The notes under the pieces were generated by a model that saw nothing but the letters and a program-made list of their open reading frames with translations, did no database searches and had not been told where the DNA came from. From Pocillopora damicornis (taxonomy: Eukaryota): a stretch of DNA of 64,000 nt. A program made the translations under genes and the position numbers. Location: positions 1 through 64,000 of the forward strand of contig NW_020843886.1 of assembly GCF_003704095.1 (NCBI RefSeq), given 5' to 3'. Position 1 is the first letter of the stretch. Each line of letters begins with the position of its first letter. Of this stretch, positions 6,673 to 49,235 are shown one piece after another.

Positions 6673-9600
6673 TCACACATCAGTTAATTCTTTGGTGGCC
6701 TTTGCATCAAATATTGCTTTCAACCGATTAGCAACATCAGTTCTCCCAGCTTCTCTCCTCACCACATTAGCAAACTCCCAAACTGTCAGTTCTGGCCTTT
6801 CAGTTGCCAACCATTCAATCACTGCTTTTGATTTTTGATCCTGAAACCTTGCTTTTATTTTGAAGTAATTGGCACCATAAAAACGAGCAATTATCTCATA
6901 GGCCAGTTTTCCACCAATGGGTGTGTCTAAAAGTTCACAAATTGTTTCCAGTTCACTTGAGTCCAATAAGCTTCCTATTGGCTTAGAATCTGAAACACAG
7001 ATTGAACATGACAAAATATATCAGAGAATCCCTGTGTAAAGGTACTGTAATTAGACTATAACACTCAATATACTATTTAAATGATATATTCTTTTCTACT
7101 ACACACACCAAAAATTTTAAAAAAACTTTTTCCCCAAATGAATTAATTTCAATTCATGTTTGGGACAACTAAGGCCTTCAAATTACAAATGAACTTTACA
7201 GTCGGGTACTCTCACTGGAATTTTTACTTTTATAGCAGTAGCATTCAAATTCACTCAGCCCTCAATTTCTGCAAATGTCTTAAATGCATTTTTCCTGTAA
7301 AAATAATCCTCGAATTTTTACCTATTTAGTCCATTTATTTAGCATTTTTCAAACTTGTGAGAAGAGTTCAGATCCACTGTAGGCATGACAAGTATTAATA
7401 ATAATTATACCTGACTTCACCAACTGTTCTGCATTGTGGCAAGCGCTTGTACACAACTTTCCATCACCCTACGATGTAAACCACAATTGATATACATCCT
7501 AAATGGCTCATGCATAGATAATTATATCATGTATAAGCTATCAAAGTGAGTACAACTATACCCATGAAAGGTGAAACCTAAAAAAAGTATAGTTTTGAAG
7601 CAAAAATATTGCCATGCACCCTCACTAGTAGACGCTAATTACAGGCATCCAGACATCATGATAAAATAAACTGGAATTCAGAAACAAAATTAATGAATGG
7701 GTCAGACTGGCCCATTTTACAATTTGCTTGGCTCCTCTTTAACTTTATACCATTTTTTATTTTATCCCTATTGCACCATAAGGCTTGAACAACAAGAGCA
7801 TTATTTCACTTGTGTTTCTATGATACTTATAATTCCTTACTGCACCCCTGACTTACACAACCATTCTGGATAATAAAGGACTTACAGAGCCACATTTCTT
7901 TTATTGTAACTTCAGAACATTTCTGTTTCAAATGGGAGAGATTACCATATATTTTCTCTGTCCAACTGGAATAGAAAGTTAAAAATTAAAGAACTTCATG
8001 TTCACCTACAAGTGGACTGCCTGGGCACTAACTCATACATTCATTACCTCTAACAGTGGTTCACATAATTCAACTGCTGCTAATCCAGAATTATAATGAA
8101 CTTTGGTACTTTTCTTCTTATGTGTTCCCCCATCTGTTGGTAGTATGGTAAAAATTGTTGACTATACATTGAAAGTAATTCGTAATGCATTAAGGACATC
8201 CAAAAATCCCCCAAGTATAATATTAGTGATTGCTTGTAATTAGACAGCACCTAACTTTTGTTACAGAGGGCGAAATTTCTTTTCTCACAAAGTCATAATG
8301 AACATGTAAAGGAGATACTACACAACAACAGTTAATTGTGACAATTTTAGTGGATCAGATTTTGTCACATAAAAATCATACCTTAAATCTTCCCTAATAT
8401 ATTTATTTTGTCTCTGACAACTAGTACACCACATGTAAGATTCTTGACTGAGAATTACCTGGATCAACACAACTATGCATTGGTGACCGTGACTTGCAAA
8501 AGCATGTTAGGTAAATTCCACTCCCAATTACCAGAAGTAGTAGTGCCACAGTGGCTGCAATTGATATACAAGAGTTATTGCAATCCTTGTTTTTAGAAGC
8601 AAACCAACTACCAACCCCAGAATGGGTTATATTTTCTAATCTGTAACCCACATCGGCACTGGTATTAGTTAAGGCTACAGTGACTATGTGACTTGATGTA
8701 GTGGCAGCTGAACTCTGACTTGATTCAGTGGTAACCTGAGGTACAAATTTTGGGGTTGATTTAATATTGCATCTATTGACACTGCTGTGGAAAGAGCAGA
8801 TCATGCTTGATTGAGATCCCAACTTTTCTATACATTCACTCTCCACCACATCTCGATCATCATTGCAGCACTTGGAACATTTAAGACAATCTCCTTTGGA
8901 TTCATCATAATACCTGTTCAAAGGGAAGAGTAAGGAATAAAAAATTATCTTTTTTGGCTGACATATAGAGTAAAACATTAAATGTCAATGTCATCATCAT
9001 TCTTGTTATCATGTCAATGACAGAATTAAAAAAAACTAGAAGCATTGATTTTTCTAAAATTTTTGCCCAACATTTTAAATAAATGGCAATCTAGTAATGG
9101 ACAACCAACTAAGTGGCTCCACTTGCCCACCATTTACAGGTCAATTGGAATTTGAAATGTTGGTTTTTGCAGAGGGAGGAAAACTTAAGGACCCAGAGAA
9201 AAACCTGATGACTGGAGAAAACTCCACTGCACCACCCCTGTGCCATTCCTGCAAGGAAACATTAAATGCCTGAACAATGACAATTAATTTCTATCAGGCT
9301 AGTTTCACTAAAATTTCCTATACCAATAGGCAAATGCCAGGTATTTAAATGTAAATCAAAGCCAAACTAGGAAAATTCTGCAGTTAATCAGATTTTAAGT
9401 TGGAATTATAGTAATTCCAAGCACCCTTTGACACCCTCCCTCCCTTTCACCCCATGGCCACTTCAAGTACAGCTGTTACATGATGTACCTGTCTTTGCTG
9501 TAACATCTCTTTCCACATTCAATGTCTGCTTGACGTGAGCAGTTTTTCATCACCACCTGGTCCTTGGAGCAAGATGAACAAGGAATGCAGACAGATATGC

Positions 9601-9793
9601 TAAATTCATTGGAAAATGACTTTCCCAGTTGGCATGGAACACAGAACACTGTTGCATCAGGTGTTAATGGTTTTGAATTTCCACATTCTGGTGAGATAGT
9701 CTGGCCTGGAGGGCAAGCCTGACAGTCTATACACTGTGGTGGACCATCTGCATTTTCAACCCAGTGTTGGCTTTTCTTGCAAGGATTTGTAGG
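6673..9793 (-). CDS. TNFR-superfamily receptor B: EDAR/TROY-like CRDs, TM, C-terminal death domain
   Basis: Exons 9793-9489 (CKKSQH..CIDCQACPPG..ECG..CVPCQLGKSFS..CIPCSSC..NCS..DIECG), 8913-8459 (YYDESKGDCLKCSKCC, S/T-rich stalk, TM ISIAATVALLLLVIGSGIYLTCFC), 8133-8048, 7468-7411 and 6989-6673 (death domain ICELLDTP..YEIIARFYG..SKAVIEWL..LTVWEF..GRTDVANRL). All phases are compatible; the first exon is uncertain because of the gap at 9832-9930. Confidence 0.88.
9140..9240 (-). mobile_element. Degenerate SINE fragment in an intron of receptor B
   Basis: Reverse-complement similarity to the 3913-4066 SINE (GAGGAAAAC..CCAGAGAAAAACC..CACTGCACCACCCCTG). Confidence 0.55.
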
Positions 9794-10578: not shown

Positions 10579-12348
10579 ATGCTAAATGGATGTTTCTCAA
10601 GCAAGGCCTTGGAATATCCATTTTTAGCCGTCGCTTCCGTCGAGATTTCGAACTCTCTGAAGAATCATGACGCAATACGAGAAAATGGTACAATTTGTCA
10701 TTTCGTTTGCTTGTTTGTGACGATTTCTCTCGCTTTTGGATTTAGCATGCAAACTTTTGAGCTTAACGCAATATTTTCTTTCCAAACGTCTTCTCCCCGA
10801 TACAGGTGGTTAGCGTTGAGAAGAGATACGTCACAAGACACCGACCGCAACGATCCCTCGAAGAAAGCAATCATTGGTCTTTTTATCGAAAGGTGAGCGA
10901 CTTTTTTTAACTCTTCGGTTCTTAAAGGTCTGATATAGCTGATCTAAACGTTATCTCCTCCATGTTTTGACCGTTTTAAGTCTGCGTAATATTGCATGCC
11001 TTACTTACGTAGGCGTGTCGGAGGCGTATGACGCCATATAAGCGAATGTGCTGTCATAAGCATATTCCTGTCAACAAAAGATTACTCTTCTTCATATGAG
11101 GTTTTACATGATGTAGAGAATGTTTCAAGCGAATGATGTTACGATGAAATAAGCCTAGGCTTTGAAACTACGCATTCGTGTTTCAGAAGAGATTGAAAAT
11201 TTAAAGCAGGTAAGGAAATTGTTTAGGACATAAGTTAATTTTTGACCCATTGTGCTAAAAAGTGCACAGTCATTTAAAGCAAGAATTCGAATTTGACATA
11301 TTCTTAAATTTGCATTTAATTTTGAGTACAACCTACACAATCTTTTCTTGATTTTTAATGGTGTTGTTTAGATTATAGTTAAGGATAGTGGGTCCACAGC
11401 TGTTTATAGTTGCCTATTTTATCAATTTACAAATAATTGTATGTTTGGAGATAAAATGACACAGGGAATATGGTTCATTTTGTACCACAGAGCTGTTAAT
11501 TATTGGACTTACTTCACTAGTTTAAATTCTGGTTACTTTTAATTTTTGCTCTCAAGCTGCATGATATTCTGTATCAGTATAATAAGTTCAATTTCAGTTA
11601 TCAATTGTTCCATCAATATCACTAATAAGTGTTCCTGGTATGCATCATTGTATTGCATCATCTGCATTTAAAGTATTGTTCACAAAGTTAAAGGAATGCC
11701 TTGAAGCATAATTATTGCATCATCTTTACTGTCACTTAAATTGTCTGACATCGCCTTTTTAAGTTAATTCACCTTGAAATGTGTAAACAAAAGATTATTT
11801 TGTTTTATCCAAGGTTTGCATGGTATTGAAAATGCCTGAAGTAAATGTTACATTATAATAAGTCTAGGCTTTGAAATTTCACAGTCATGTTTAAGAAGAG
11901 ATTGGACATTAAAATTAATTTTACTAAAAAGTGCACTGTCATTTGAAGCAACAATTCTAATTTTAGGTATTATGAAATTTACATATGATTTTAAGAAAAA
12001 TCTACTCAATTTTGTTTAATTTCTATTAGTTTTATCTAGATTATAGTTAGGGTTATAATTATAGTTAAGTAGTATTCACAGAGTTGAAGAATGCCTTGAA
12101 CCATAATGCATCATTCTTTCTGTCACTTAAATTGTCTGACATTTTTTGTTGTTGTTCCATCTTGAAATGTGTAAATAGTTAATTTTCTTTAAGTTTATGC
12201 AAAGAAAGTGTTCTATTATTTTGAGTGTTAATAAAGTTAGTNNNNNNNNNNNNNNNNNNNNNNNNNNNNNNNNNNNNNNNNNNNNNNNNNNNNNNNNNNN
12301 NNNNNNNNNNNNNNNNNNNNNNNNNNNNNNNNNNNNNNNNNATTTTAG

Positions 12349-14053
12349 GGGAGTTGAAGTCGAACCATGAATGTCTGTCGTGCTTCATAGCAATATTCAA
12401 GCGAGGAGTTCTCTCTGGAAAAAATCGAAGCCATGTCGTCTATGTTATTCCGAGGGAAAAATTCGATTTGGTAAGATACCGAGCGTCTAGTTAGAAAAAA
12501 TTCAAGGTCTCCTCAAAACCTAAACGAAAAAGGTAACCCTTTTAACCCCCAAGATCTGATTGTCATGTCTCCCTTAGAGCTGCTATACATTTCCTTTCGA
12601 ATTAGTTCGGATAATTTGGTGTTAATTCAAGACAACAACTTCCACATCATACGTTTGAGTATTCTCGTAACCTTTTTGCTGGATGATGTACGGATATTAC
12701 GTGGAAAAGTTACATGTTAATCACTTCTGAGAGTTAAAGGAGTAACGTGAGGTACATTGCTTACTAAATCCAAACTCGCACAGTTGCTTCTCGACACCAC
12801 GACGCCTACAATAGAGTACACTTAATTACATAAATGGAAAATTAATAATACTGGTCAATAGAACCTCACAAGAGTTATCAGATCACAATTAAATATTGGG
12901 TTGAGAACTTGAAAAAAAATTTGATAACGAAAACATAAATTGACACCAACCTTTTGGTGGTTAATGCATTTCATATATGACAACACGTCTTTCGATTTCT
13001 CAGGTGTACGACAAAATCGCTCAAAATGAAGCAGCTGCTTATGAAGGAACTGAGATCGCTGTGATAGATGAGAAAGGATCCTTGTTCGCCTATCATCCTC
13101 AAATGGCAATCCAAAGTGAGGTAAAAATCATCTCTGAAATGGATTGTGGCGAATGTTTTGCCTTGGTCAGTCCTGCGGTAGGTAACACTTTTTCTCCTAA
13201 AAAAATTTTCGGTCTGAGTTATAATATTGCATTCTAATTTACTTTCTAGCATAAATTTGTTTGAATACTCTAGTTAGCAGTAAGTGCTTAACTCCGCATA
13301 GAGAGATGCAGGTTTATCCAGGGCCAGGGGTTGACAACCACAATACATTTAATAGTGGCTTACCCACTGTAATTAACCTGCTCAGTGTTGGGTTTGACTC
13401 TACCATAGAACCTACGGTTTACAACTCTTCTGAAAATAGGTCAGCTGGGCACCCTGTTTGCATTCTGCAATCCGTAAGTGCAAGTTTGGCTGAAAAATCT
13501 GTGAATCGATTCTTTTTTAATAGTCAACCACCATTGGCGTCCAACATCTACTTGCAAAAAGTGAGGAGAGGTTATTTCCTGGCGCTTGTGTCAAGCTGGT
13601 CACCACATATGTTGGAGAGCAAAACACTCTTCGTGAAGACAAAGTCAGGATGGCACTGCTTAGTGGAAAAGCGAGACTGGTCATTCTCATTCCTACCAAG
13701 GTATGGCTTTAGTACTAGTGATGTCTTAATAATAAAACTTCTGTGTTCGTATTGATTGAATCTCCCAAAAAAAAAAATGAAAATTTTTTTCTTCCTCAGT
13801 ACTGAAAACATTCATATAATTTCCTCTCTTCATTCTCAACCTCATTATTAAAAATTGCGAGTGCACTTACCATTCCAATTTGGCTTTACATAACAATATT
13901 TTATTTAATTGCTATTAACAACTGGTTATCAATTAATCAATTAATTGCTTTTATTCATGATCTTCTAATTAGTGTTTTCAGAGTTCCCTACTGACAGCAG
14001 TCTTGCGACTGGAGGCGTTACCTCTTAAGATAGTCAGTTGTTTCAAGTTGTAA
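12349..14053 (+). CDS. UPA-like adaptor B (3' exons; 5' exons probably near 10,600-10,900 and in the gap)
   Basis: Exons 12349-12470 (LSCFIAIFKRGVLSGKNRSHVVYVIPREK), 13004-13177 (VYDKIAQNE..EGTE..LVSPA), 13524-13700 (KSEERLFPGA..YVGE..LIP) and 13982-14053. Phases and motifs match adaptor A exons 3-6. Confidence 0.75.
12534..12746. mobile_element. Short MITE-like element with (T)AACCCTTTAAC...GTTAAAGGGTTAA-type ends (piggyBac-like termini)
   Basis: Inverted termini. Related copies occur near 28310-28510, 28911-29115, 51121-51320, 52082-52285, 52350-52546 and 54750-54940. Confidence 0.6.
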
Positions 14054-14858
14054 ATAACAAAAGAAACCAACATAAAGAACCCAATGATTTTCAGTCGGCA
14101 AAACGTTTTTTAGAATCTTAGAGAGAGCTTCTCTTCCTACAACACGTTGAAGTGCTAACTGCTGCTAGTAGTTGGATTATGACAATCCACGAGAGGTACT
14201 TCCTGGTTAACAATCATATGATTTTAACCTCCCACAATCGCGTGTAAAACCCAGAAAGCACTAATCAATAAAGGTAACTTTCTGTATTCTTAGGTTCATC
14301 ATACGCCAACCGATGGCCTTGAGAATCAAAACTATTCAGGTACAAAACTTAAAATTTAATTCACAAGTCCAGTTGGAATTTTTGTGATACAAGATTACCC
14401 TATGGAGCTTTACCTAGGTCTTAATTACAAGTCAAGTAAGGTTCTGGTGTTTTGACTTGCCAAATATCAAGCACTCAGGTCAGGGAACAGAATAGCTCAA
14501 TTGTTATGTNNNNNNNNNNNNNNNNNNNNNNNNNNNNNNNNNNNNNNNNNNNNNNNNNNNNNNNNNNNNNNNNNNNNNNNNNNNNNNNNNNNNNNNNNNN
14601 NNNNNNNNNNNNNNNNNNNNNNNNNNNNNNNNNNNNNNNNNNNNNNNNNNNNNNNNNNNNNNNNNNNNNNNNNNNNNNNNNNNNNNNNNNNNNNNNNNNN
14701 NNNNNNNNNNNNNNNNNNNNNNNNNNNNNNNNNNNNNNNNNNNNNNNNNNNNNNNNNNNNNNNNNAGAAAGAAAGAAAAATAGATGGCAGGATAGTTGTG
14801 TTTATTTAAAAGAAATTGTTCACTGATCCTTTTCATTTCCCATTTCAAAGTTACGGGT

Positions 14859-15167
14859 ATGCCAAAACTGGACCGAGACGCCCTTCAAAGCTGTCACGTA
14901 GATCTTATTGCCAATATTGGGGACTTTACATCGTTATGTGCCTATCTTTATCAATACAATATCTTGACGGCCGATGATAAGGCATTTCTGCGAAGTTTTC
15001 CACGTCCATCAGATGGCATCGATCACTTGCTAATGATGATACCCAGAAAAGGGAATATTTTAGACATTTTCATACGTATCTTGCAGCAATCACGAGAAAA
15101 TCAAGAAGCTGCCAAACGTTTAGTGTTGAAACGTCTACAGTTACACAGAAAGACAGAGAGTAAATGA
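14859..15167 (+). CDS. CARD-domain protein or exon (RAIDD/caspase-2-type CARD motif), 102 aa
   Basis: MPKLDRDALQSCHVDLIANI..LCAYLYQYNILTADDKAFL..DGIDHLLMMIPRKGNILDIFIRILQQS shows the six-helix CARD pattern with LL..IPRKG..F..L. A splice acceptor lies at 14850. Confidence 0.8.
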   Translation: MPKLDRDALQSCHVDLIANIGDFTSLCAYLYQYNILTADDKAFLRSFPRPSDGIDHLLMMIPRKGNILDIFIRILQQSRENQEAAKRLVLKRLQLHRKTESK

Positions 15168-15687: not shown

Positions 15688-15796
15688 CAGGTTGAGTTCA
15701 GGTTGAGTTCAGGTTGAGTTCAGGTTGAGTTCAGGTTGAGTTCAGGTTGAGTTCAGGTTGAGTTCAGGTTGAGTTCAGGTTGAGTTCAGGTTGAGT
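15688..15796. repeat. 11-bp minisatellite (CAGGTTGAGTT) x about 10
   Basis: Directly visible; overlaps the candidate stop codon of receptor C. Confidence 0.95.
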
Positions 15797-18700
15797 ATAA
15801 AGCTGGCAACTGAATGATGCAGTCAGAAATTTCTTTCTCTTTTCCCTTTCCACTCTTTACAACAGTGATATCTGCGATACTTGTGACTTGGTTTCCTTAT
15901 GAAGGAAGAAAGTAATAGTTGTGATTACTGGGAAGAAAACATCAGTTCCCCTACAGGAACAAAGTTCCTTGCATTTTCAAGTAGTTTTTTACTTCAAAAG
16001 AATAATAACTGACAACTTTACGACTCAATCCAGCTATACTGACCTTCATCCATTTGAAGGCTACTAAAACCTAACACCTCTCAGTAAGTGTAAACAACTC
16101 ACCATTCATGGCATTTGCAATCGAGCTCTGATTCATACACCAGCTTGGATCCTACAATGAAACAAATGGAAAATTAGAACTCTTTCAGTTGTCATATCTC
16201 TCAATCCAAAAAAATCAGAAAAACCCTGTGTTGGCAGTAACTGTACTGCTGGTAAACTCTCATTGGTGTTGTGGATTAAATTTCACAACTTTCATTGACC
16301 CATTCATATCTTCAAATTATTAGTTTCTGGTTCTAAACACAAATATGACCCCAAGCAAGAAGAAGACTAACTATAGGTGATCAAATCCTCATTAAAATAG
16401 ACTACAACAGAGGCCATTGTGTCTCCTGCAGATTAATTCAGTGAAATTTAAAATAAATTTATATTTTGTGCTATAAAATGTGCTACGTAAAATGTACCTC
16501 CTTAATAGCAGTGCTTGCATACATCAAAGTTTGATTGGATGCCTGAGTCAAAATAATAGTAGCAAAGAAGCTGCTTTTCTTTTTAGATGCTGAGCTAAAT
16601 ACCAGATTGCATCTCGGAGTTGTACTGAAAGAGTTCTTCAGTGATGCATAGCTGATTTTCTAAAAAAAAAAGAGAACAAAATGCAAATGTCTTCAAAATC
16701 ATCAAGAGATAGCAAAACTTTTAGGGATCTGAAAAGAAAGTTAATTATCAAGTTCACAATTTTAAGATCTTCAGTGAAGCTTGAAAGTTTCCATTTTTCT
16801 CAGAATCTTGCTCTGTTGTTGCACGACACTCAAACAATGACTGCAAAATACCATTTGGTGACCACTCTTTAGCTTCCAGCCATCAATATCCTTCACACCA
16901 ATTTCTACATCCTCTTCATGAATTACAGAAAAATCAAGAGATTCAACTGATGACATGGGCTTTCCTCCTTCCTTTTTCTCCTCCCTCATAACATTCTGTG
17001 GAGCAAAGGTCACACAATTTTGTTAAAATTCATTACTTACAGAAATAGATCTAACAAAATTATATAACATAAGTAACCATGATTGGAAGTTGGGATTCTT
17101 TATGAACTAGACTGGCACAATTTAAAAATCAAATTACATATACTTGTAAATACCTTAAGAATCCTAGTTAAGACTTCAATTATGTACAAAAACAGATTGC
17201 CACAGCTGGGTAAGATGTCACAAGGTTTGAAACACCTGTCCTCTTACTGAACAATTGAAAAAAAATTTATATATGAAAGAGATCTTTTGGTCTCTTCGAT
17301 GCTGAAACGCAGGGAGAAATTCAATGCCCTTACTATTGTCAATTCAGTCCTATCTAAGGAGAAAATCTGTTTTTTATCCTCAAAAGCTTACCTCAAATGA
17401 CCACTCGCAGTCATCAAAGCAGTACAATCTCACAACAAGGTCTTCTCCAACTCTGGTGTCATTACAAAATGCCATGACCTTCATTCTCTTGAATACTGGT
17501 AAAGATTGCTCTTCACAGTGTCCAACCACTGCAAATGTTGCAAAATAATGTGTTTTAAAGCTAACATGGTTGTTTTTGGGGAGGAATTCTTTTATTCCAC
17601 ATGACTTACTACCCTTCACATAACTTACTACCCATTCATCATTTTTCAACTCCTTCAAAATGATTTTCCACTTATTTGGAGAAAGCACCATGTTTGCACC
17701 ATGAGGTATCTGAAGCTCAAGGGGTTCCAGCAACTGGTTCTTTGAAATAAAAATAAATGCTGGACTTAGTGGAAATTCATCATCCTCAAGAAATCCAGGT
17801 AAATCCAGCCCTTCTGGTGTGGCATGCAGTACCAAATCACGTGGCAAGTGTTGAAGAGTAGACCTGTTGTTATCAAGAGAAACAACCTCAACTCCTGTCT
17901 TTTCAAATACCATATGACCTGGGCTATGTTGTTTTGGACACTCCAACTCTGCCTCCTTACTACCTACGAAATAAAATATGCATATGCAAAAATACGCATA
18001 AAATTTGTATATCGTAAACACAAGGTAGCTTTTTCAGAAAAACAGTATGGGAAGACTCCATTTTCTAGTCCTTTCTACAAAACAAATAAAAAATAGAAAA
18101 CAAAAACAAATAAACAAACAAAAAGTGAAAAGAAGTGAGGTACTCTGTTTTTGTTTAAAACGCTAGGTGTAGTACTCTATACACAAGAGTTTTAAGCCTA
18201 TAGGCACTGAAAACATAAAGCAATGAATACCAATTAGAGATAATAAATGAATGCTTAACTTACCTGCAAGTGAAGAAGTTTTTCTAATTTCAGCACAGTC
18301 CTTCTTTTCCATTAGCTCACAATTGTTTTCTTCATTTGGAAATGGATACTGATAGTTGCCCTCCGATAATGGTACTGAAATGGCAACCCAAATCAGAAAG
18401 AAACATATGCTCAATACAATCAATGTTGTCACCTTGTCAAGTTCGATTGAGTTCACTTTATAGTTTTCTTGTTCTACAGTTTGCAGCTGCCCAAACTGTT
18501 CATTTAAGCCCAAAGATGGAATACGAGGCTTAATAGCGAGCCCCTGAGAGTTCTCTGAAGACGCCATTCCTTCCTTTATACAGTTCACGATACTTTGACT
18601 GTCGCTAAAACCACAACACCAGAAGCACTGTTCACAAGCTTTTGAGTGGTCGTTCAGATAAAACCCTGGCATGCACTCACCACAAATGGTATTTGATTTG

Positions 18701-20225
18701 GTGGAACAGTTGGCTAAAACCTTCTGACCAATCGAACAAATTTTGCAAGACTGTAGAACACCCTGCTGATCGACGAAGGTTTCTCCTAAGATCGGAAGTT
18801 CACACTTAGGTATCGCACCATCAGTTACAACACTTCCACATGGTTTGGTGAGGCCAAATTCGTCTGAACAAACAGGACAGGGTAAACAGATCTGTTTGCC
18901 ATCATGCTTTACAATTGTGATCTCATCATACCAACACTTTGCTAAACAGGGTTTTCTCTTGTGGTAGCTGCACGATTGTGTTCGAGGCATCCCTTGCATG
19001 AGACATTGTGGGACAACTACGTCCAAATCACCCAAACAACATCCTGAGCAAGGGAGACATTTGGACAAAGTTTGGTTCTGGTAATACCCATCTGGGCATG
19101 GCTTGCAACTACATTGAGTGTTTGAGATTTTAGTGCATCGCTTTATAGTTACTTCATCTGGACTACAGGTTGAACAGGGTTTACAACTCTCAGACGAGTA
19201 GGAATCAGAGTAGTAGTCCGAGGCACACTCCTCACACTCAACTTGGGTGCCGATGGTCCTCCTAGTTCCGCAAGGGATTGTAACCTCAGATCCTGGGGGG
19301 CATTTGATGCAATCTGTACAAGCGATATTACCATCTGGTAGTTCTACTGCATGTTGGTCTTCTCTGCAAACCTGAGCTGCATTGGCTTGATTGACCTATT
19401 GAGGAACACAAATTGGATCAAACAAAGGTTTCTCTAAGCTTAAATTTCATTTGATGTAACTTTTTTGTTTTTTGATATTCGCATTGCAGTTTCTTTTCGC
19501 TTGGAAGCATGTTAACAACATGAGTAACTATTGCATCCGTAGCCTGCAGAGCAGGCGTCTCACTAGTGTGAGCTAATGTTGTAAGCTCGCGATCGTTTAT
19601 CCGACCGGTTGTGTTTGACTTGGAGTTAGAGTTTCACTCCCCCACCCCCACCCCTCTCCGTATTTTTGACCGTCGACCGCCCCCTTAGTACAAATTTATT
19701 TCTCTCCCCAGCCTTCCGCTGCCATCAAAGATGGCGGCCATAATTTTCGTTAAGAAATTACTGAGCACTCTCTCGCCAAAATTACGCCTGATCTGCAGGC
19801 TATTACATCAGTGAAACACACCAAAGAATACGGTCATGAAAAGTTCATAGCCTCCAGTGCAGGTGTAATTTTGGCGAGTGAGTGCTCATCCGGATAGACG
19901 ATATATGTAACGTTAACTCGCCCGCACTAAAAGTACACATGGCTAGTGCATCTTGAAAACTTCAGCCTCAGTCTTAACCGAATTGGTACCGATCAAATTT
20001 GACGTCCTCTTGCCATTCAAGGCAACTTCTTTTTCTTTTGGGCCCCTCACACCTAAAATAAGCACGATAAACAATACATAACTAACCCATCTTAACTGTC
20101 TGTTTAGATCAAGAGGTTTTCACTTCCGCTGAACATCTCACCGTTGCAAGACATGAAATGATACAAGACAATAACCTTACCAAGACGCAGAAGAAAACAT
20201 AGTGCCTAAGTTGACAAATTTCCAT
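15786..20225 (-). CDS. TNFR-superfamily receptor C: signal peptide, two tandem EDAR-like CRD modules, TM, cytoplasmic ZU5 + UPA, no death domain
   Basis: Exons 20225-20181, 19395-18264 (open frame checked), 17963-17392 (ZU5: TGVEVV..PLSPAF..PLELQIPHGA..W; UPA start KRMKVMAF..LVVRLYCFDDCEWSFE), 16995-16852 (NVMREEKKEGGK), 16659-16498 and 16151-16081. An alternative terminal exon is possible at 15895-15786. Confidence 0.88.
19540..19802. mobile_element. MITE with TAGCCTGCAGA..CAGGCGT terminal inverted repeats in intron 1 of receptor C
   Basis: Left TAGCCTGCAGAGCAGGCGT, right ACGCCTGATCTGCAGGCTA; flanks TTGCATCCG and TTACATCAG resemble a degenerate TSD. Confidence 0.7.
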
Positions 20226-20646
20226 TTCTTTGACCTCAACGGCTACCTTGATTTTACAAATGCAGAAAATCAGTTGATTAGAAGAGACGCTGTTGACCCT
20301 CTACCAGTAACAAATATATCGACCAAAACCTACAAAAGTGGATATTTGTTTAAACGCCACTGGATGAATATGTTTCGACTGATTGCTAGGTCTCCCTTAT
20401 AAGATGGAAGGAGTTGAACCACTGAAAATTTGTTCTTCTTTGAGGAAGTCAGAATTTTGATTATACTATCCTTTCGTTTTCGAGGGGGTTTCCCCGACCT
20501 TTGTTTCATTCAGCCAATAAGGGAAAGGAAACGACACTTAGCCAATGAAAGGGGGCTTATATAAATAATACAAATTAAGCCTGCTTTCAGTTCCCCTTTT
20601 TCTAGGAACTGACTAGTTGAAGCAAGAAAAAACGAAAGTGCTGAAA
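20226..20646. promoter_or_regulatory. Bidirectional promoter C with NF-kB, IRF, CCAAT and TATA motifs
   Basis: CTTTCGTTTTC 20471-20481 lies next to GGGGTTTCCCC 20485-20495; two CCAAT boxes (near 20514 and 20542); TATATAAA near 20558. Confidence 0.65.
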
Positions 20647-23600
20647 ATGGATTCAGAGGACAGACAAAGCGAGGTAACAAAGGTCCAGTGATGTTAATAT
20701 CGGTTAAACTTTGTTTATGAAGTTTCATTTTCAGTTAAGATCAATTAAGAACCACTGAACTGCGTACTCATAAATAGGAGGAATGAAGCATTTGAAGGAC
20801 ACTTTCACTTCGAAACACTTCTGCACGGAAACTGACTCTAATCTCCCCTTGTTCAACACCTCTCATCCACCCCTTCTAACATAAAAGCCAGTTCATTCTC
20901 CTATCTGTACTATGACCCAGATTGTTCTGTCGTTATAGCCACTGCCTTGAATAAATCAGAGAATGCGGCATATATTTACACGCAGTGGTAAGACTGAGAG
21001 CATAAATGCAATCAAACTGACTTTCATTACAAAAAAAAAAAGAGGAAAAAGTGATTCAAAGTGCTTATTCTCTGACTTAGAGCAACGATGGAGCAAGGAA
21101 TGAAAGAGATGACGACCTTGACGATAGGAGCGAAGTTGTTCAAGATGAAATAACGCCAGACATCGGCGATTCTCCACAACCAGGCGCATCCAGTTTCAGT
21201 CCAACAGAATTTTGTGTCTGCCCTGGAGAAACAACCCTTTTACTTGATATAAATGAAGCCATCTGCCCCCTTTGTGGGAAACTCATCGACAAAACTGTAA
21301 AAGAAGCTACGACTTCAGCGGCTGATGAATCGGGCGCATCAGCAAATGGCCATGTTGACGCATTAATTTCAACTCTGGTACAAGGACTAGTCATTGTTCC
21401 ACCCGAAGCATCTCTCGAAGATGAAATTTTTGCTTCAACACAAGAAAACTGGAGTGTAGACACAGATCTTCCATGTGAGGAGGGACAAGGTGGAATCAAA
21501 ATTCCCGTTGAAAGTAAGTAACACAACACGCGTTGTGAGCCATTATTCACTTGATTTATTACTTTCTCGAAGAAATAAAGAATGCTATTTGCGTAACATT
21601 TCCGAGATTCAAAACACCATTAAACAAAATTAAAAGACTCCGAATACTATTCAATACACTACAATGGACACAAATCATCTACCTACTTTGCTAGCATTAC
21701 TATATGGCTAATCTAATAAAGATGTGAAAGTATAATAGCCTCTAATGCATTTATGGCGTAGTCACCTCCAGAAGCTAATAAGTCTAAACATTTACTGATG
21801 ATTAACTCGCAATTGAGAGTAAACGTCCTTAGAGTGGAGAGTAAAGTTTAAGATGGAAATAATAGCTGTATAGATAACTACAAAATAAAATTTATTTAAT
21901 AGTTCTCTATACTATTTGTGCCAAAAAAATGCCCCTCTAAATCTTGTTTTTTTGTTTGTATTTCACAAGTCAAATTTGACTTAAATCATACTCAGTAGCC
22001 TGAATAAAACACAGCTTAAACTTCCTAAGTAATCGTATAAATTCACACGAGCAGAATTAACACTCTTTTAAAATAGAAGAAAAGCAGTATCCCCGATGTA
22101 CAGTTTAACATCCAAACATCTACAGCTGCAAAGCCCTAATTCCACTTTGAGAAGGTAATAGCAGATGCTTAAGGGGGTTAAGTTGGTTGGTTGAATCAGG
22201 GAAATGCTTCAGCCTCCTCTTGCCTCCGAAATTATACTTAGTTTTTATGCAAGTTTTCAAACTTTTTTGGATTGATCCACACAAAGATCTAAAGAAAAGC
22301 TCCAAAACAGGAGAAATCTATACCAGCTTAATTGATATATCAAAACAACAACATAAACAACAATAATTCACAACACATTAAGACATTGTGTGACAATGCT
22401 GTGAGAGCTTAATAAGGAATTATGAAAACTTTTTGCTTCTATTGTCGTTGTTGATAAACTTGTTATTGAGTTACTTTAGTTCCGAAATAGAGAACGATGC
22501 TATCAATTATCACCTGTAAGATGCGACATTACAATTGTCAAGACCATTTCCTTATGATTGACAAATGTAGTCATGTACCTGTTGTATATAATGTAATCGC
22601 TTAATTGTTCTTTTAGGCATCTCACACCCATCAGTCCAAGTGCCATGTCCACCTCTCCTTCTGAAGTTCTTTGTGCTGAAACAAGATCATATAGATGTTA
22701 ATGAAATGTTATTTTCATTACATTTCATCGAATATTCAGAACAGGTATAGAAAACTGTTAATAAGACACTAACATAGTATAATTGGGCAAAGCCAAAAAA
22801 AATATCTCCATTGCAATCCCAGTGGACTCAAGGAGTCAGTCATCAGAGCCAGTAATTTTTGCTGCCAACTTCTTTAAATGTGAAGCTCACTGAATTATTG
22901 CCCTATAAGGTCAGCCCTCTTAACCCTTACCAGTAAATATGCTGCCAGGTTGATACCATCACTGCATTGTTGAATTTTCTGCCCGTCATTATTAACACTT
23001 GAAACCAATAATTATTTGATGAATGGAGAGATATTGTACTAACCATCAGCTCAATAACCTTACATATTTGACAAATTCTACCAGGAAATGCTCATTCTTT
23101 GATTTGAACTACATGTACTAAATCAACTTCAATGATTTTTCCCCTTTGCTTAGGGGAGGGTAACTTCATCAGTAAGACAGTTGGAGCAACACCTGGGAAT
23201 GAGATTTCAGGTTGTCCCACTTGGCAAGGAACATTCTACCCAAGCAGAGAGTAAGCATCTCCACACCATCAATGTAGACCAACAAATTACAGTTACGTTT
23301 CAATTGCTGGGACAATGTGAAAGAAAATTCTTACTGCATGGGGACACTTTTGAGGTAAAGCAACTATAGTAAAATATTCCATAAGAAAATGTTATGAGCA
23401 GGAAAAAGGACCACTCATTAAGTTGGGTGGTATCTTGATTTTAGGGATCTTGCAAACACTAGAAAAAGGGAAGTAAGTGAATAAAATATTACTGACAAGG
23501 GAAGGGGGCGGTTACCTTGGTTGGCTTAACACATATGAATCATTAATCTAGGATTTTATATACACTTTTTTGGTATATTCAAAATAATCTGTAAAACTAT

Positions 23601-24464
23601 GCAAGACTTGATTCCTTGGGTTGATATGAAACAGTGTCTGACACTTTTTTTTGTGTGTGAAGAGGATAGCAAAAACAAATATTTTGTCTTTAACAAGGTC
23701 AGAGTGTAGAGACCTAAGTTTCCCAAATTTTTCCAGATCCCTGCCCCCCCCCAAAGACTGACCAACAGCTACATCCAAAACAAAGTAGACAGCTGACTAA
23801 TACACTTGTTTCTGTGATTTCAAGAAACACCCCATAAAACAGAGTGGGCATTTGGGAAAAACCTCAATAATTCACTGAAACTATATTTTTTACTTACTTC
23901 TCCTAAACATTCTCAGGTACCTTTGATACGTATAAAGTCCTTGTGCCAGAACAGAATTCCTGGTTCTGTAGCTCAAGTTTGCGTGATGCCTATTTGTGAA
24001 CCTGGGGAAGTTTGTCAGGATCACATTAAGATGACAATCAACACTGGGCATACTATTCACATCATGTTAATTCCTATCTGGGTAATTATAACCATGTTTA
24101 TTAAAGTATATGTATGAATTCACCTCAGCTTTCTCTGCTATTCTGTCACTACTAGACAAAATACCTTTGAAACCTTGTAGAGGGGCTGACAATGACCTTA
24201 CAAAGTTTTCTAAACTATCTACTAGGAAGAGGTCACATAATTATATTACTTTTAATCCCTTTGTAGGAATATTTTGAGAATAATCAACGTTTTAATTATT
24301 GAATAAATTAAAACAAAATTAAGTATCAAGTAAGGGAATTAGTAATTGCTTTTTAATAAAATAGATGGAGTGGACTGAGTAATTTCACATGGAACAGATT
24401 GCTCTGTAATAATTTTTTCTTCTTTCTTCCTTAGTCTTCAAGGCCAGCTGATCAAGGAGAGTAA
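20647..24464 (+). CDS. UPA-like adaptor C: acidic N-terminus, CVC..CPLC motif, UPA-like domain
   Basis: Exons 20647-20673, 21081-21513, 22617-22744, 23154-23354, 23917-24081 and 24435-24464, all phase-consistent. LKFFVL..LFSLHFIEYSEQ|GRVTSSVRQLEQHLG resembles the start of the UNC5 UPA domain. Confidence 0.82.
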
Positions 24465-25542
24465 AAAATGCCTCTGTGCCTGGTGAGTAAACTTAATGAT
24501 TCAGATTAAAACTCAACTCAAATTATTGGATTAAGACTGCACACAATACAATAGTTTTGCTTTGTTTAAATTTGAGTAAACTGTAACCAAACCCTCTTGT
24601 TCAAGCTTTTTCAGCTTATATTCAGGTGTATAGAATGACAATGTAATCAGATAATAAGTTATCTTCCAAAGGACTGATTAGTCATCAGTAACAGAGAACT
24701 GCAACCCCATGATTTCTAGTTTATCATAAAAAACAATAATGTTGCCATGAGTTGCATTTTAGTGATTTTAATTTTCTCTGATTAGCAAGTTCTCACTCTA
24801 ACACATTCACTAAGAATATCCAGATGGAATCTACTTGCTGAAAAAAAAATTTCTTGAATGATATCCGGAGCAATAAGAAAATTTATGCCATTCTTAACCA
24901 GTTTCAGGTTCACTAGTTGCCAAATTCTTGGATGTTATATACTTGATGTACTTTTTTTCCTGTATGTATTTGCAATTTAACTTATGGTAACAAATGAATG
25001 CATGCAAAACTTGCTAAACAAAAAAACACTATGCAAAAAGTCCAATTAATAAACATTGTAACCATGCTGGTTACAATGTTGCAGTAAACAATGCAAACTT
25101 ATGCCCTGAATATGACCCCAGATTTGAAAATTTCCTTATTGCTCCTGGTGCACTCATGGAATCCTTTGTCTAAGCCAGCTCATTTTCATGCAATAGATTT
25201 TTCTACAATTTTCTTCATCTTTCCCTGGGAAGTCCACCAGCAGGTCATAGACTATTAATATTACCACTTAGTATCAATTGCCATTGTGAATTTTTTGTAA
25301 AATATAGCTTAGCATATAAACAGATTACATATAGTCAAAACTTGCAGTAGCAGCCCTCATAATCAAGCATTATTTACACAATGAATGCAAGGTATCAAAA
25401 TGTCAGTTTAAATAATTACATTAACTTTGTAGGTTAGCTGTGATATAATCTAGCAACATTAAATGGATTTCTTAGAACTATGAAATTGGGAAACCCTCCC
25501 AAAAAAAACAAAACAAAACAAAAAAAATTAGCTCTAGAGGTG

Positions 25543-25822
25543 GAGCGATTTTCAATTGAGTGTTGAAAGTAATCCGAGATTGCATTGGTTTTGCTCCTTT
25601 TCTCTGCTGTGATAGGTAAAAAAAACTTGCACCCTTTTTAACAGGTTATTTGCAAAACCAAATCCAGTAATAACTTGGTGACTTGCATTTTTTTGCCCTT
25701 AGGGAGTTTGCTTTGTCTTACTCTAAATTCTCACTGGCTATTTACCATGCTTCCTATTACTCTGCTTGGCCATTGTGATTACTTTAACTTTGGTTTGACG
25801 ACACTCAGGCGAAGAGCCCTCT
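25543..25822. mobile_element. Dispersed MITE-like repeat (GAGCGATTTTCAATTGAGTG...ACACTC..CTCTA)
   Basis: Imperfect inverted ends; a related copy lies near 54360-54640. Confidence 0.55.
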
Positions 25823-26556
25823 ATCACAATTGTTTGCTATATATATATATAATTGTATAAATAACTTATAAATCTTTTTTCATGTTCAACTTATGTAATC
25901 CCATCTTTAAAAGATACCAGAAAACAATTAGTAAAGCACTGCTTAAATCTAGTTTAGAGGGAGATCACTTTTATAGTGACTTACAATACTAGACTACCTC
26001 AGGTACACGAGTTTCACAGAGAAGGCCCTGACATGATTTAGGGCAATAAACAAAACAGGGTGTCTAGTGAAAGGCTAAGTGACATCTATCAAAAGGATGA
26101 ATTCTTCCCCAAACTTCTTTGTTTTGCTTATGAAACAAGGAGTGGGGGTTAATTGTTGATTCACTTTGAGCCTAATCCACATGAACCCCCTCAAAAAGAG
26201 ACAGAGCCTAATGATGCTGAAAAGCAACAGATCTGTTAGAAGTAAACCCACCTTTTTCAGAATTCCACTACTTTCAGTCTTTCCCTTATTTGATTACACA
26301 GCAAAGAATATTCTACATTGGAAATTCAGTTTTTACTTTCAAATTTTTTAAGTGTTCACAGAACAAGCACAAAAGTCCATTGCCTTTTAGGCATCAATGG
26401 ACCTAGACTCTTTAAAATGAAACATAACGCAAAGTGTGGAATTCTTAATAAGGACCTAAAAGTGGCTGCTGACAATTTTATGTTGTTCATGTTTGATGGA
26501 ATATGACACTACCACTCTGACTAAGTTGATATCAGAAATAACTGTTTCATGCATCA

Positions 26557-29532: not shown

Positions 29533-30414
29533 TATATACTATGAAAGGAAAGTACAGCTGCACCCAGGAAAGTTTTCTAAATAGTCAACAAACTTTTACT
29601 CACTGAGCAGTACAAATTATGTATTGAGATATCTGTTGTTTATTACCATGTGTTAAAAGAGCTGATGACTACGCATGCAAGACTTAAATCAATTTTTCCA
29701 TGGATTTAAGACCTGTTAATCTGAGCCTTACTATCATCGTAGAATTTTACAATAATTGGAGGGAGGGGACATCAGGACAAATAAGTATTTGAAAATTAAT
29801 CAAACAAGAGAACTTTGTAGGTATTGAATGTTTGCCTGTCCACTTCATCTTACACTAGTGCCTTAATTTCTGATAATCAACTTACAGAGCTTCCTACTGA
29901 GAATTGCCTTTCCATAGTGGTCTTTGCAAATGAGGCTTTCCATAGAACTGTCTTTTCATATTAGCTGATAAAATAAACTCTACTAACTATCCTAATATTT
30001 GAGTGCTTCTCCCTGTGATAGTTGTTTTTGTTTGTTTTTTTTTGGTAAAACTTACTTTAAACAGTCATTCACCTAGTCCCTCTACTCCTTTAACACATGA
30101 TTAAAACAAGTTGTATATTTCTTGATTTGGTTTTTTGATACAATGAATGTGACATAAGCATATATTGTGCAACATTGACAAATAGTAACAGGATTAAATA
30201 AAACATAACAGTGGCTCATCAAAGTTTGTTTGATTGTTTCTACTTGGAATGCAACACTGTGCACTTCTTTGCTTAGGGATCCTAATGCTGCCAGCCCACT
30301 ACAAACATAACATACATCGTATAATAACATTCAGGGGGTAATTGTTTCCTTTATGCTGTTACATAGAAGCACAGATGTGAGTTGCACATACATTGCACAT
30401 TTTAGTCAAGTCAC

Positions 30415-33342
30415 TATTAAAGTAGAAACTCACAATTTAAGAGCTTTCTTTTCAGTAAATTTTGCATTTGTACCCTCTGGATGTGACTCAATGGTTGGTG
30501 ACATGAGCTATACACCATATGGTATTGTAACTCACTTTATCCAGTTTTGTATCATAATAGCGTTCAAGGAACGAAACACCCCAAATGCATCCTTGAGTGG
30601 TTTCAAAAATATCCTGAAAGAACTGCTGTTCTGCCATTTGCTCAGCAATCCAGAAACTTATACCATGAATGTAAGTTGGAGGAAAGAGACTGAATGGAAT
30701 AAACTCTTTTCCCAATGACAACCCATCCACCTAAAATATCAGTAACGAATACAAATTTTACAAAATCACTAGTTATAATAATTAAAAGGATTGTGGGTAC
30801 CAATCAAAGGTAACTTGTGTTGCCAATATTAGAAATTATTTTTTATACAACATGATTCTTTTACAGTATTATATAGCCTTTTTTGAATGAAAAAGAAAGA
30901 GGAAGCATAAAGCACATGTGACTCTTGTAGAATGAAAAATATGACACATGCACCTCACACAAAAATTCAACTGCTGTTGATTATGGTCATATCCTTAGAC
31001 CACAACTATGAAGAACTACAACCACTACCCTATTTCCCTTGACAGGCCAGAGATTAAGATGGCAAAGAATCAAAAGTCTCACACTGACCCTTAGTGCACA
31101 ACTGACAAGTTAATGTAAACACAATGCACACAGATTTTTATCAGAACTACAGCTTGAAACAAAAGACCAAAGAAATAAACATCACAGCAACAAAAGAAGT
31201 ACCATTTGGTATGACTTAGTCAAACACCAAAAAGATGAGTGGTAGTTACCCTATATGTCTTCCATATGGAAATTAGCTGAATCGTAGACAAACACTATCA
31301 GTTCCTTAGAAAAAGCATACATAGCAGGGCGTGAAATTAATTTTTTTTTTCTGATAGCCTCTTGGCTCCTAAATTCTTCAAAGTGGTAGCCAATTCAAAA
31401 GAAGTTGGTCGCTTAGGGTTAGACAAAGACAAACAAACCCTTTTTTTTTACGCTGTCATTGTTCTAGAAATTAAGTTAGGGAAAAGATCTTTAACGTGCT
31501 ACAAAGTGGACACTAGGATAGGTGATCGATCTTGATGCATGTGCTGCGTTTTAGAAACAAATTTAATGAGGAAGTTTGTCGCGGATTTATCTTTGCAAAT
31601 CTTTTTAATTTACTATATCTCTAGGTAAGGTTATGATGAAACATTCTAGTCGTCAATTTGGCGACTAATTTTCAGGATTTGGTTACCAAAGTAAAAACTT
31701 TAGTCGCATTGGCGCCTGTATTAGGCGCAATTTCACGCCCTGCATAGCTGTGTAATGTTAATTACACAAATTCCATTATTGACCAAAATTTTCATATGCC
31801 ATTAGAACAAGGGTGAATAAGAAGCCTTTTACATAAAAATGAATTTAGTCACTCATGAAAGTAATTTCATCTACAACTAGAGGTTTTGCATCCGACCTTG
31901 TTTTAAGGATAAGAATTTTTGAAACTACTGAACTCAACAATTTATAATAAATGGTTCTTACTTGTGTCTGAATCAAAACTATTCTTGAATCTGAATAACA
32001 TGTGTCAGGACAATTTTAATTCCTATACTGTAGATTATAAGTTTAAAAAATTTGCAAAATGGCTTGGAGGACTTACCCATGAGTCACTGACACAGGATTG
32101 AAAGGTCTTAGCTCAAGCCGTTTCCAGGAGTGACAGTTCTTGCATGGTATTTTTGGGCAACCAAATTGAATTTAATGTCTCGCACACTCACATGGGACAC
32201 TGGGCACAAGCAAACTGTTACAGATAACTGAAAATTACTTTAAAGAGGTTGAGCCCATAAGTGATTTGGTTGATATTATGACTTCAATACCAGTTATCAA
32301 AACATAACTTACTGTCCTCACACCATTCCACTTAAAGGGTACGGCGTCACTTCATCTTGACAACCACATCAAAAAATGCCATCCCACATTACATGGACAG
32401 AAGAACCTTCTGTGAGGGTTCAGGGATGATTTCCGTAAAGCTCTATACTTCATCATACACATAGTTCTTGAATAAAGAAAAACGGCGAAAACAATATAAT
32501 GACTTTGGAACCTGGGCTTTGTTTTAAAACAGTATTGGATTTTAAGGAAATCATTCCGAGGTTGACATCATAGAAGGTATTTTGATGGGGCAGGTCAAAT
32601 TGATTGGTTTCGTGATGACAGCAGGCGCTAAGGAAAATTCTCCAGAATTTAAGTCACCGGCCGTTCGCATCTTAACCTTCACAGTGCGTTGATTTATCGC
32701 TAAGAAATAGCACTCTCCTGCGGTAAGTAAGGAGAATCTGGTGAGAAAACGATCAGCTAACCAGCTCATCAATACCAAATAATCTCCAAGTGACAGAGCT
32801 TCTTAAAAGCCGATCGAACTCATCATTTAAAAAAAAAGACAAACAAACAAATACCAACCAGCTCTCGCAGCTCGGTAAACAACCTGCCAAGAGTTTCCAA
32901 GCTCCCTTCTTGGATTGTCTAAGGGCGTTCCTCCCTGACACTGACAGAGGCTTACACAGATATCGCCTTTGAACTGTTCCACGTGGTGCGCGGCGCTTGC
33001 AGAGAACCGCTCACCAGATCTCTCGATTTGGCAATGTTTGATTTGCCGCCAGTGAGTGGAAAATTAAAGATCACCCGATCAAACGTTCTAGAGCCAAATT
33101 TTTGACGAAGATCTACTGCATCTACCTCGTGCATGATCTCAACGCTTTCAAAAGAGGACAGTTTCTCGATGCTTTCCACAGCGAAGTCGTTAGTCACCAA
33201 GGCTGCGCGCGACTCAAACGATGTCCCAACGATTTTCACACGTCTTTGATAACGCTGACGCCAAACAAACTGTGGATGAAAAGTTACCATCTCCGACTAC
33301 TAGCACATTATAAGAATGTGATTTTGGGTCAAGTAACGCCAT
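30415..33342 (-). pseudogene. FDXACB1: FDXACB1 pseudogene (duplicate of 44986-49073)
   Basis: The exon 1 copy (33342 to about 32858) has frameshifts. The terminal FDX-ACB exon copy (30731-30415) is frameshifted (..KVSYNTIWCIAHVTNH*). No counterpart of exons 2-3 is visible. Confidence 0.85.
31325..31742. mobile_element. Non-autonomous hAT-like element with a 5-bp TSD (hAT5-type)
   Basis: 14-bp TIR CAGGGCGTGAAATT / AATTTCACGCCCTG flanked by the direct repeat CATAG. Confidence 0.8.
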
Positions 33343-33649: not shown

Positions 33650-33879
33650 AGCCTATCAACCAATGCAACATCTTGACTGCTAATGATAAGGCATTTCTGA
33701 GAAGTTTTTCTCGCTCATTAGAGGGCATTGATGGATTGCTCATGATAATACCCAGAAAAGGGAATATTCTAGACATTTTCATAGGTATTTTGAAGCAAAA
33801 ACGAGAAAACCAAGAGGCTACTAAACGTCTCGTGTTGAAACGTTTTCAGTTACATGGAAGACAGAGAGTAAATAAGTAA
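33650..33879 (+). pseudogene. 5'-truncated copy of the CARD exon
   Basis: ILTANDKAFLRSFSRSLEGIDGLLMIIPRKGNILDIF matches 14940-15167; the N-terminal helices and the acceptor are missing. Confidence 0.8.
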
Positions 33880-49073: not shown

Positions 49074-49235
49074 AGCCGTTCATAAAGCGGAAACATAGAG
49101 CGTTGAGATCTAGAAGCTCAAGTGTGCGCCATTTTGTTTGCGCGGACTTGGATGGTTATTGCTGTGGTATAAGCATCACCAAAGTAGACTAATTGATATT
49201 AGTACCCAGCTGTTTCTCTGTCAATAACATTGCCC

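Follow-up and report, generated by a model that had tools for sequence, protein, structure and literature searches.

An unnamed coral gene family beside TNF-receptor-like genes, with a most likely very divergent UPA-type domain and a CARD on one member

Introduction

To our knowledge, the UPA domain is known only inside proteins of the ZU5-UPA-death-fold type, namely UNC5, PIDD1, ankyrins, NLRP1, and CARD8. In mammals, autoproteolysis inside the ZU5-UPA region makes a UPA-CARD fragment, which is freed by degradation of the N-terminal part and is lethal on release. It is this free UPA-CARD that forms the filaments and constitutes the active species in two human inflammasomes. Besides, decoys such as ICEBERG/CARD18, CARD16/17, and the POPs keep a death-fold domain, the rest having been lost. 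In corals, the genes for TNF receptors (TNFR) and for cell death form greatly expanded families, which have been tied to bleaching and disease. The present study deals with a gene of the coral Pocillopora damicornis, here called gene C, which lies at positions 20647-24464 of a 64,000-nucleotide stretch (contig NW_020843886.1, hereafter the window; contig C521 in our genome scans), and with its paralogs A, B, and D in the same window. A sequence-only reading of the window had described the family as soluble, stand-alone UPA-like proteins, that is, a UPA freed from ZU5 and death domain (DD), which could act as an adaptor or decoy. It had also likened the tail to a motif in the UPA of UNC5 and pointed to a UPA contact between PIDD1 and ANKRD26.

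The C-terminal fragments of human NLRP1 and CARD8 consist of a UPA of ~150 aa, a linker of 17 to 25 aa, and a CARD (PMC7794386). UPA self-association cuts the threshold for CARD filament formation ~100-fold in NLRP1 and CARD8 (PMC7794386). A review of PIDD1 describes its recruitment by ANKRD26, and UPA as the mediating domain is not stated there (PMC9162469). Here, we report that the ~165-residue C-terminal β-sandwich of gene C is most likely a very divergent UPA-type domain, judging from a structural model and from exon layout. Of greater weight is the finding that one family member is of the UPA-like-CARD type and that the family makes up, together with a TNFR-ZU5-UPA receptor devoid of a death domain, a conserved three-gene module.

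Results

The open reading frame (ORF) of gene C runs on the plus strand from the ATG at 20647 to the stop codon at 24462-24464 and comprises six coding exons for 327 aa. Contigs of four poly-A or oligo-dT library runs from three studies, laid on positions 20000-25999, give the GT..AG junctions 20673>21081, 21513>22617, 22744>23154, 23354>23917, and 24081>24435, each present in three or four runs. The corresponding intron phases are 0, 1, 0, 0, and 0. Letter for letter, the spliced ORF equals P0010, which is GenBank RMX53346.1, 'hypothetical protein pdam_00018688 [Pocillopora damicornis]'. By these junctions and this identity, the coordinates proposed from the sequence alone are exact. As intronic sequence, from unspliced RNA or from DNA, is abundant in the libraries, expression is judged from the spliced joints and not from the depth. 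Gene C is a real, spliced, and expressed gene, already deposited, unnamed, and unstudied; a literature search on five locus names of the family returned no paper.

Exon 1 (20330-20673) contains a 5′ untranslated region (UTR) reaching to at least 20330, the ATG, and nine codons up to a phase-0 donor, and an RNA contig joins 20330-20671 to 21079-21513. Exon 2 (21081-21513), which is 97% identical in P0003, encodes an acidic N-terminus, a four-cysteine knuckle, and an S-L-E-D-E-I motif, ending at ..KIPVES in phase 1. The UPA-like domain starts in exon 3 (22617-22744), with the strands ..LLLKFFVL.. and ..LFSLHFIE.. and a phase-0 donor. Exon 4 (23154-23354, phase 0/0, 39% identity to paralog D) supplies a helix (..VRQLEQHLG) and the middle strands. 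The best-conserved exon, exon 5 (23917-24081, phase 0/0), supplies the final three strands, from ..RIPG.. to ..LIPIW. Exon 6 (24435-24486) adds nine codons and the stop, followed by the 3′ UTR. All of these exons are on the plus strand, and exons 3 to 6 are likewise drawn from RNA. Gene C therefore has no death-fold domain behind its tail, as its stop falls nine codons past the domain; only paralog B continues into a CARD.

The fold of the tail was modelled with AlphaFold2 from P0010 on a 13-row alignment that held no UPA protein among its rows. In the model, strands at residues 167-188 and a helix at 200-210 are followed by seven more strands. A Foldseek search of this model against 350,542 PDB chains placed UNC5b (3g5b) first (E = 0.017, probability 0.95), with 104 residues of the tail aligned on UNC5b 706-828. 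Rat NLRP1 FIIND chains (7crv_B, 7crv_D, and 7crw_B) took ranks 2 to 4, and human NLRP1 (6x6a_G) rank 8. Since the sequence-only reading had named this fold family beforehand, the top rank of a UPA is unlikely to be due to chance.

The exon layout is consistent with the same assignment. In seven diverse ZU5-UPA genes of the genome, the second UPA strand is followed within a few residues by a phase-0 intron (..F-E/K|GT); this intron is common to L006-L009, L012, L013, and L016 and to positions 17392 and 37081 of the window. In gene C, the phase-0 intron falls after ..IEYSEQ| and in the neighbouring receptor after ..CEWSFE|, just as the sequence-only reading had it. Receptor UPA exons after that intron (42-48 and 54 codons) are phase 0/0, and so are family exons 4 and 5 (58-69 and 55-60 codons). 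Three phase-0 introns thereby bound the domain exons of the family, as they do in the UPA exons of the receptors.

Profile alignment with hhalign was carried out against five coral UPA domains taken from other receptors of this genome and from another coral. The family aligned co-linearly with this profile over 125 columns, in the register drawn by the sequence-only reading: ..LFSLHFIE.. on ..LVVRLYCFDD.., the helix ..VRQLEQHLG on ..VMREEKKEGG, and ..RIPG.. on ..TTPRC... The score of 15.3 was equalled by 11 of 300 column shuffles, which is marginal; that of the N-terminal domain segment alone was equalled by 4 of 200.

Several observations weigh against a UPA. Pfam UPA (PF17217, curated cut-off 27 bits) and FIIND were unmatched at E ≤ 10 in P0010, P0003, P0017, P0009, and P0026, and also exon by exon. 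More generally, no Pfam family was matched by any gene-C-family exon or full-length member. A six-frame scan of the genome with PF17217 returned no family exon and none in the window, its weak exon-level matches lying in other receptors only. PDB sequence searches with the family profile and with P0010 were blank. The receptor's own ZU5/UPA exon found nothing in PDB either, and in Pfam only a sub-threshold ZU5. Therefore, these coral domains are very divergent, and the blank PDB search of the tail becomes less telling.

The structural evidence also has its weak side. The P0010 model is poor, with a mean predicted local distance difference test (pLDDT) score of 41.9 and values of 57-66 across most of the stretch 231-320. 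In geometric alignment, UPA and ordinary Ig/PapD-like sandwiches come out level. A second model, of the B-type protein P0026, had a pLDDT of 36.9, and its Foldseek list was noise. The sequence parallel to the neighbour's UPA, as claimed earlier, is not significant when the family is aligned with the two neighbouring receptors alone (hhalign P = 0.56, best local match out of register); with the broader profile, hhalign's own P is 0.13, and the intron positions differ by some four residues in that alignment. Furthermore, no ZU5 stands ahead of the domain: the 153 preceding residues are acidic or of low confidence, include the Cys knuckle, and have no Pfam ZU5 match. The HFS/SFS cleavage motif is absent from the start of the domain, which reads ..PVES|ISHPSV.. 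in C, ..PVPHVCDHSV.. in A, and ..CQTCGELKSNHEC.. in B.

The blank Pfam and PDB sequence searches would equally suit an ordinary Ig/PapD-like β-sandwich unrelated to UPA. The family would then be a lineage-specific soluble one, linked to the receptor by shared-promoter co-regulation only. The Foldseek probability is high for PapD-like chaperones too, and the tool itself warns that low-confidence models yield meaningless matches. However, the pre-named fold ranked first among all chains searched, the alignment to coral UPA domains is co-linear, though marginal, and the exon layout is common to the family and the receptors' UPA exons. The domain-linker-CARD layout of paralog B, in addition, is known only from UPA-CARD proteins (PMC7794386). 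We consider an unrelated sandwich rather unlikely. The proposed UPA identity is thus supported in part, by the Foldseek ranking of UNC5b and NLRP1 and by exon layout, and not by Pfam, model confidence, or geometric alignment. At roughly two chances in three, the tail of the gene C family is a UPA-like domain, and it is not a Pfam-level member.

Paralog B (12349-15167, plus strand) carries the CARD. Its domain exons (12349-12470, 13004-13177, and 13524-13700) have phases equal to those of gene C and are followed by a stop exon (13982-14053), a linker exon (14294-14339), and a CARD exon (14851-15167) that matches Pfam CARD with 27.9 bits (E = 2.5e-6, cut-off 23.9). The first exon of B is not visible in the window, and an assembly gap (12242-12341) lies at that place. 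The sequence-only reading had ended B at 14053. Because the 413-aa ortholog from P. verrucosa skips such a small exon and continues into the CARD exon, the exon ending at 14053 is alternative or unused. Calling B stand-alone is accordingly wrong.

The P. verrucosa locus (L005) is collinear with window positions 12342-34101 at 93-98% identity. In its record, the 413-aa gene is followed by an oppositely oriented gene for a 734-aa receptor, in which TNFR_c6 and UPA are the only Pfam domains listed and a death-fold domain is absent, and then by the 327-aa ortholog of gene C. The 413-aa gene, rebuilt from its splice sites, gives exactly the recorded 413 residues. Its first exon encodes C-x2-C..C-x2-C; after it come three domain exons, the linker exon of 46 nt (VHHTPTDGLENQNYS), and the CARD exon, so that the protein order is zinc ribbon, UPA-like domain, 15-aa linker, and CARD.

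Related proteins were found in further corals. A HMMER search with exon 2 against 1.84 billion representative proteins returned five, one of them 327 aa long with 97% identity to exon 2. The gene C clusters hold P. damicornis records, P. verrucosa XP_058957102, a P. meandrina protein, and Stylophora pistillata LOC111336433 (67% identity); all orthologs are named 'uncharacterized' and measure 327-333 aa. When exon rows of A, B, and D were added to the profile, the search also reached Stylophora LOC111336431, a B-type protein, of which one isoform splices exon 5 to the linker exon. Two look-ups in the ESM Atlas gave no usable match, and a word search with exon 2 gave genomic ORF fragments only, owing to its length window. 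Contigs L002-L004, taken up as transcripts, proved genomic. A 103-aa match (P0006) led to two contigs of ENA assembly ERZ25067872, ~99% mutually identical and probably haplotypes, of a more distant coral. This assembly shows exons 2-5 of a C/D-type gene (37-68% identity) with a small stop exon (SAGQS*) and, for a B-type gene, the final domain exon with an intact CARD exon after it.

The neighbouring receptor (15786-20370, minus strand) has a TNFR cysteine-rich ectodomain (Pfam TNFR_c6, 75 bits), a transmembrane (TM) segment, and a ZU5-UPA tail with UPA exons at 16852-16995 and 16498-16659. It stands head-to-head with gene C. The first exon of the receptor extends from 20179 to at least 20370, where the contig continues into receptor exon 2, and gene C begins at or before 20330, so the first exons overlap by ~40 bases. 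These overlapping 5′ ends indicate a bidirectional promoter of receptor and gene C. The window contains a tandem series of three such receptor/family pairs, those of A, C, and D, and paralog B is tail-to-tail with the receptor partnered to gene C. The order B with its CARD, receptor, and C recurs in P. verrucosa and in ERZ25067872.

Hydropathy gave no hydrophobic stretch fit for a signal peptide or TM helix in the gene C protein; the highest 19-residue Kyte-Doolittle mean is 1.45, and 1.0 in paralog A. Among the first 60 residues, 18 are Asp or Glu in gene C and 17 in paralog A. In our reading, the product of gene C is cytosolic, and its acidic N-terminus is probably disordered. A candidate zinc knuckle (21213-21275, plus strand) comprises Cys54/Cys56 and Cys71/Cys74 in the form C-x-C-x14-C-x2-C, paralog B having C-x2-C..C-x2-C. 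The four cysteines are kept in A, B, and C and in the Stylophora and P. verrucosa orthologs, the two pairs (C-x1-2-C .. C-x2-C) being conserved family-wide as in a zinc ribbon or knuckle; a zinc site is likely. Between the knuckle and the sandwich, at residues 120-125, lies the S-L-E-D-E-I motif (21411-21428, plus strand). Every paralog has an Asp-containing counterpart in the alignments (SLED-E, SLDD-E, SLDD-Y, or LSTD-E), and the conserved S-L-x-D-E could be a caspase cleavage or TRAF-type site. The earlier description thus holds for solubility, for the acidic N-terminus, for the Cys and SLEDEI..KIPV motifs shared by A and C, and for the absence of ZU5 and DD; the family is, moreover, genomically tied to TNFR-ZU5-UPA receptors.

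The same N-terminal features could be taken to mean a zinc-finger regulator that acts in the nucleus or on ubiquitin/TRAF-type partners. The sandwich would then be a generic interaction module and S-L-E-D-E a TRAF-like or caspase site. The acidic N-terminus and the TNFR-family neighbours would fit such a protein, as would the resemblance of the knuckle to zinc ribbons and to the final TRIM32 RING knuckle, in matches that stayed below threshold in both Pfam and PDB (E 0.04-0.3). Yet all of these matches fall short of a curated cut-off, the protein shows no recognisable DNA-binding or RING domain, and conservation is best in the C-terminal sandwich, not in the knuckle. Such a regulator is very improbable in our judgement.

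The remaining members of the family are as follows. Paralog A (1231-3664, plus strand) has an intact 349-aa ORF in exons 1231-1263, 1463-1937, 2341-2471, 2562-2768, 3032-3211, and 3641-3664, with canonical splice sites and the intron phases of gene C. Paralog D (39184-40053, plus strand) is partial, with exons at 39184-39390 and 39545-39709 and a small stop-containing exon at 40027-40053, which gives a short CARD-less ending (SARPSEST*) like that of gene C. Its upstream exons are not seen, and an assembly gap (38532-38631) lies there. As proposed earlier, the four paralogs share exon phases, as far as the exons of B and D are visible. Across the genome (234.35 Mb in 4,393 contigs), the family is confined to the window, bar one exon-5-like fragment on contig C4113. 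That locus (L016, G000:C4113:1-10000) has a divergent TNFR-ZU5-UPA receptor at 19-2606 (plus strand), and the fragment (7911-8054), with an in-frame stop, lies ~5 kb off on the opposite strand.

A truncated CARD exon was found by tblastn at 33661-33855 (plus strand). It is 80% identical to B's CARD, misses the first ~30 domain residues, and has no Pfam CARD match; probably it is what remains of a CARD exon located downstream of gene C. Beside it, the gene at 44989-49079, which we take by eye to be FDXACB1-like, has a partial duplicate (30085-33296, minus strand).

Between P. damicornis and P. verrucosa (L005:10001-13647), 48 of 984 sites of the gene C coding sequence differ, and the ratio of nonsynonymous to synonymous substitution rates (dN/dS) is ~1.0. 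The ratio is 0.9 in the N-terminal half and 1.5 in the domain, the latter from only 13 changes, and most of the differences fall in the acidic N-terminal exon. At the whole-gene level, recent constraint is not visible, which counts against the reading favoured here; either relaxed or diversifying selection would produce such a value. The N-terminus of gene C, by this comparison, appears to evolve fast, which is common among immune genes. For exon 5, comparisons among paralogs and species give a dN/dS of 0.16-0.22, the synonymous sites being close to saturated. The domain has therefore been constrained over the long run.

A ratio near 1 would also be expected if gene C were a decaying duplicate of a UPA-like-CARD gene that lost its CARD exon and is transcribed, without function, from the receptor's bidirectional promoter. 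The truncated CARD exon downstream, the abundant unspliced or intronic sequence in the RNA libraries, the partial copy D, and the stop in the C4113 copy fit such decay. On the other hand, four species from two genera all have an unbroken ORF of 327-333 aa, and the short CARD-less ending has been retained in paralog D and in the more distant coral. The purifying selection on exon 5 over the longer span and the four cysteines in every paralog speak against decay as well, and we hold this explanation to be improbable.

Some transcript variants of gene C were seen. The 3′ UTR is spliced from 24486 to 25233, and an alternative exon ends at 22154, each in one run. An additional exon between 21513 and 22617 was rejected, as the main junction skips that stretch. 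The possibility that gene C runs in frame into a CARD was likewise rejected: the exon 6 stop is in the frame of exon 5, and the sole downstream CARD sequence is truncated. A 329-aa isoform at NCBI reads into intron 5 (24082-24114) and ends in the 11 residues VIITMFIKVYV*; the Stylophora annotation has a similar ending, VIRTMFVQVYA*, and unspliced contigs cover intron 5 of gene C. The window has a G+C content of 32-43%, and its genes are intron-rich. Downstream of gene C, a short repeat (25494-25595) shows very high depth in all four RNA libraries, with many loose ends on either side, and is probably a dispersed repeat or mobile-element fragment. Between A and B lies a receptor of another type (6676-9793, minus strand), with TNFR cysteine-rich exons, a TM segment, and a helical exon (6676-7020); no ZU5-UPA exon was seen in this receptor. 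The helical exon looks death-domain-like by eye, yet it has no Pfam match.

Discussion

The pairing with TNF-receptor-like genes and the CARD on a sister gene point to an unstudied cell-death or immune signalling module. Within it, we give about one chance in two to gene C being a CARD-less regulator of a receptor/UPA-like-CARD pathway, with a divergent UPA-type tail. The UPA-like domains would associate mutually and/or with the ZU5-UPA tail of the receptor. Paralog B would supply the CARD in trans: its CARD would be clustered, recruit a CARD caspase or adaptor, and nucleate a CARD assembly. Gene C could join the same assemblies without a CARD and thereby tune or cap signalling, as a decoy or a scaffold. 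The adaptor or decoy role suggested earlier becomes more concrete because paralog B carries a CARD. Since UPA self-association eases the formation of CARD filaments (PMC7794386), an oligomerising CARD-less paralog is plausible as a regulator. A complex prediction for the UPA-like domains of B and C scored 0.00, the partner's own fold being uncertain, and speaks neither for nor against binding.

A bolder version of this proposal would be a 'split FIIND' in corals. Here, the receptor would hold the ZU5-UPA, the neighbouring gene would encode a free UPA-CARD adaptor, and gene C would be a CARD-less UPA that restrains the adaptor or caps its filaments. In a cnidarian, this would amount to a precursor or analogue of the core of the NLRP1/CARD8 inflammasome, encoded in the germline and coupled to a receptor. 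We regard it as doubtful.

Should the coral domain prove to be a UPA, its module would be able to occur in pieces encoded by separate genes, one with a CARD and one bare. Both pieces would be coupled to TNF-receptor-like genes without their own death domain, which offers a testable model of coral receptor signalling and bears on the origin of the inflammasome-type UPA-CARD arrangement. If it is not a UPA, the locus still presents a coral gene family that is conserved, expressed, and without a name, and one of whose members bears a CARD; its interest would then lie chiefly in coral immunology.

The UPA domains of UNC5, PIDD1, and ankyrins (PF17217; 3G5B) resemble the gene C tail in being β-sandwiches of ~150-165 residues that begin with two strands and a short helix. 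They also provide its best Foldseek match, and the coral's own UPA genes have the same three phase-0 introns. In contrast to them, gene C is unmatched by Pfam and has neither a ZU5 before nor a death domain after the tail; a Cys knuckle and an acidic region precede it instead, in a soluble protein with its own gene. UNC5CL/ZUD and other ZU5-UPA-DD proteins are likewise intracellular death-fold signalling proteins built around a UPA. Whereas those carry ZU5 and DD in cis, the coral parts are apparently split among the receptor (ZU5-UPA), B (UPA-like-CARD), and C (UPA-like only).

The UPA-CARD fragment of NLRP1 and CARD8 (6X6A, 7CRV) has a counterpart in layout in paralog B, with a UPA-like domain of ~158 residues, a linker of 15 residues, and a CARD. 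NLRP1 UPA chains are also among the top Foldseek matches of the gene C model. Unlike the mammalian fragment, the coral domain is encoded free, without a ZU5 or an SF|S/HF|S site; gene C has no CARD at all, and no sequence-level homology was detected. CARD-only and PYD-only decoys offer a functional analogy, as they too are tandem truncated paralogs beside a signalling adaptor that keep one interaction domain while the effector part is gone. Gene C differs from these decoys in what is kept: it would retain a UPA-like oligomerisation domain and not a death-fold one, and a decoy action is, for gene C, proposed by analogy.

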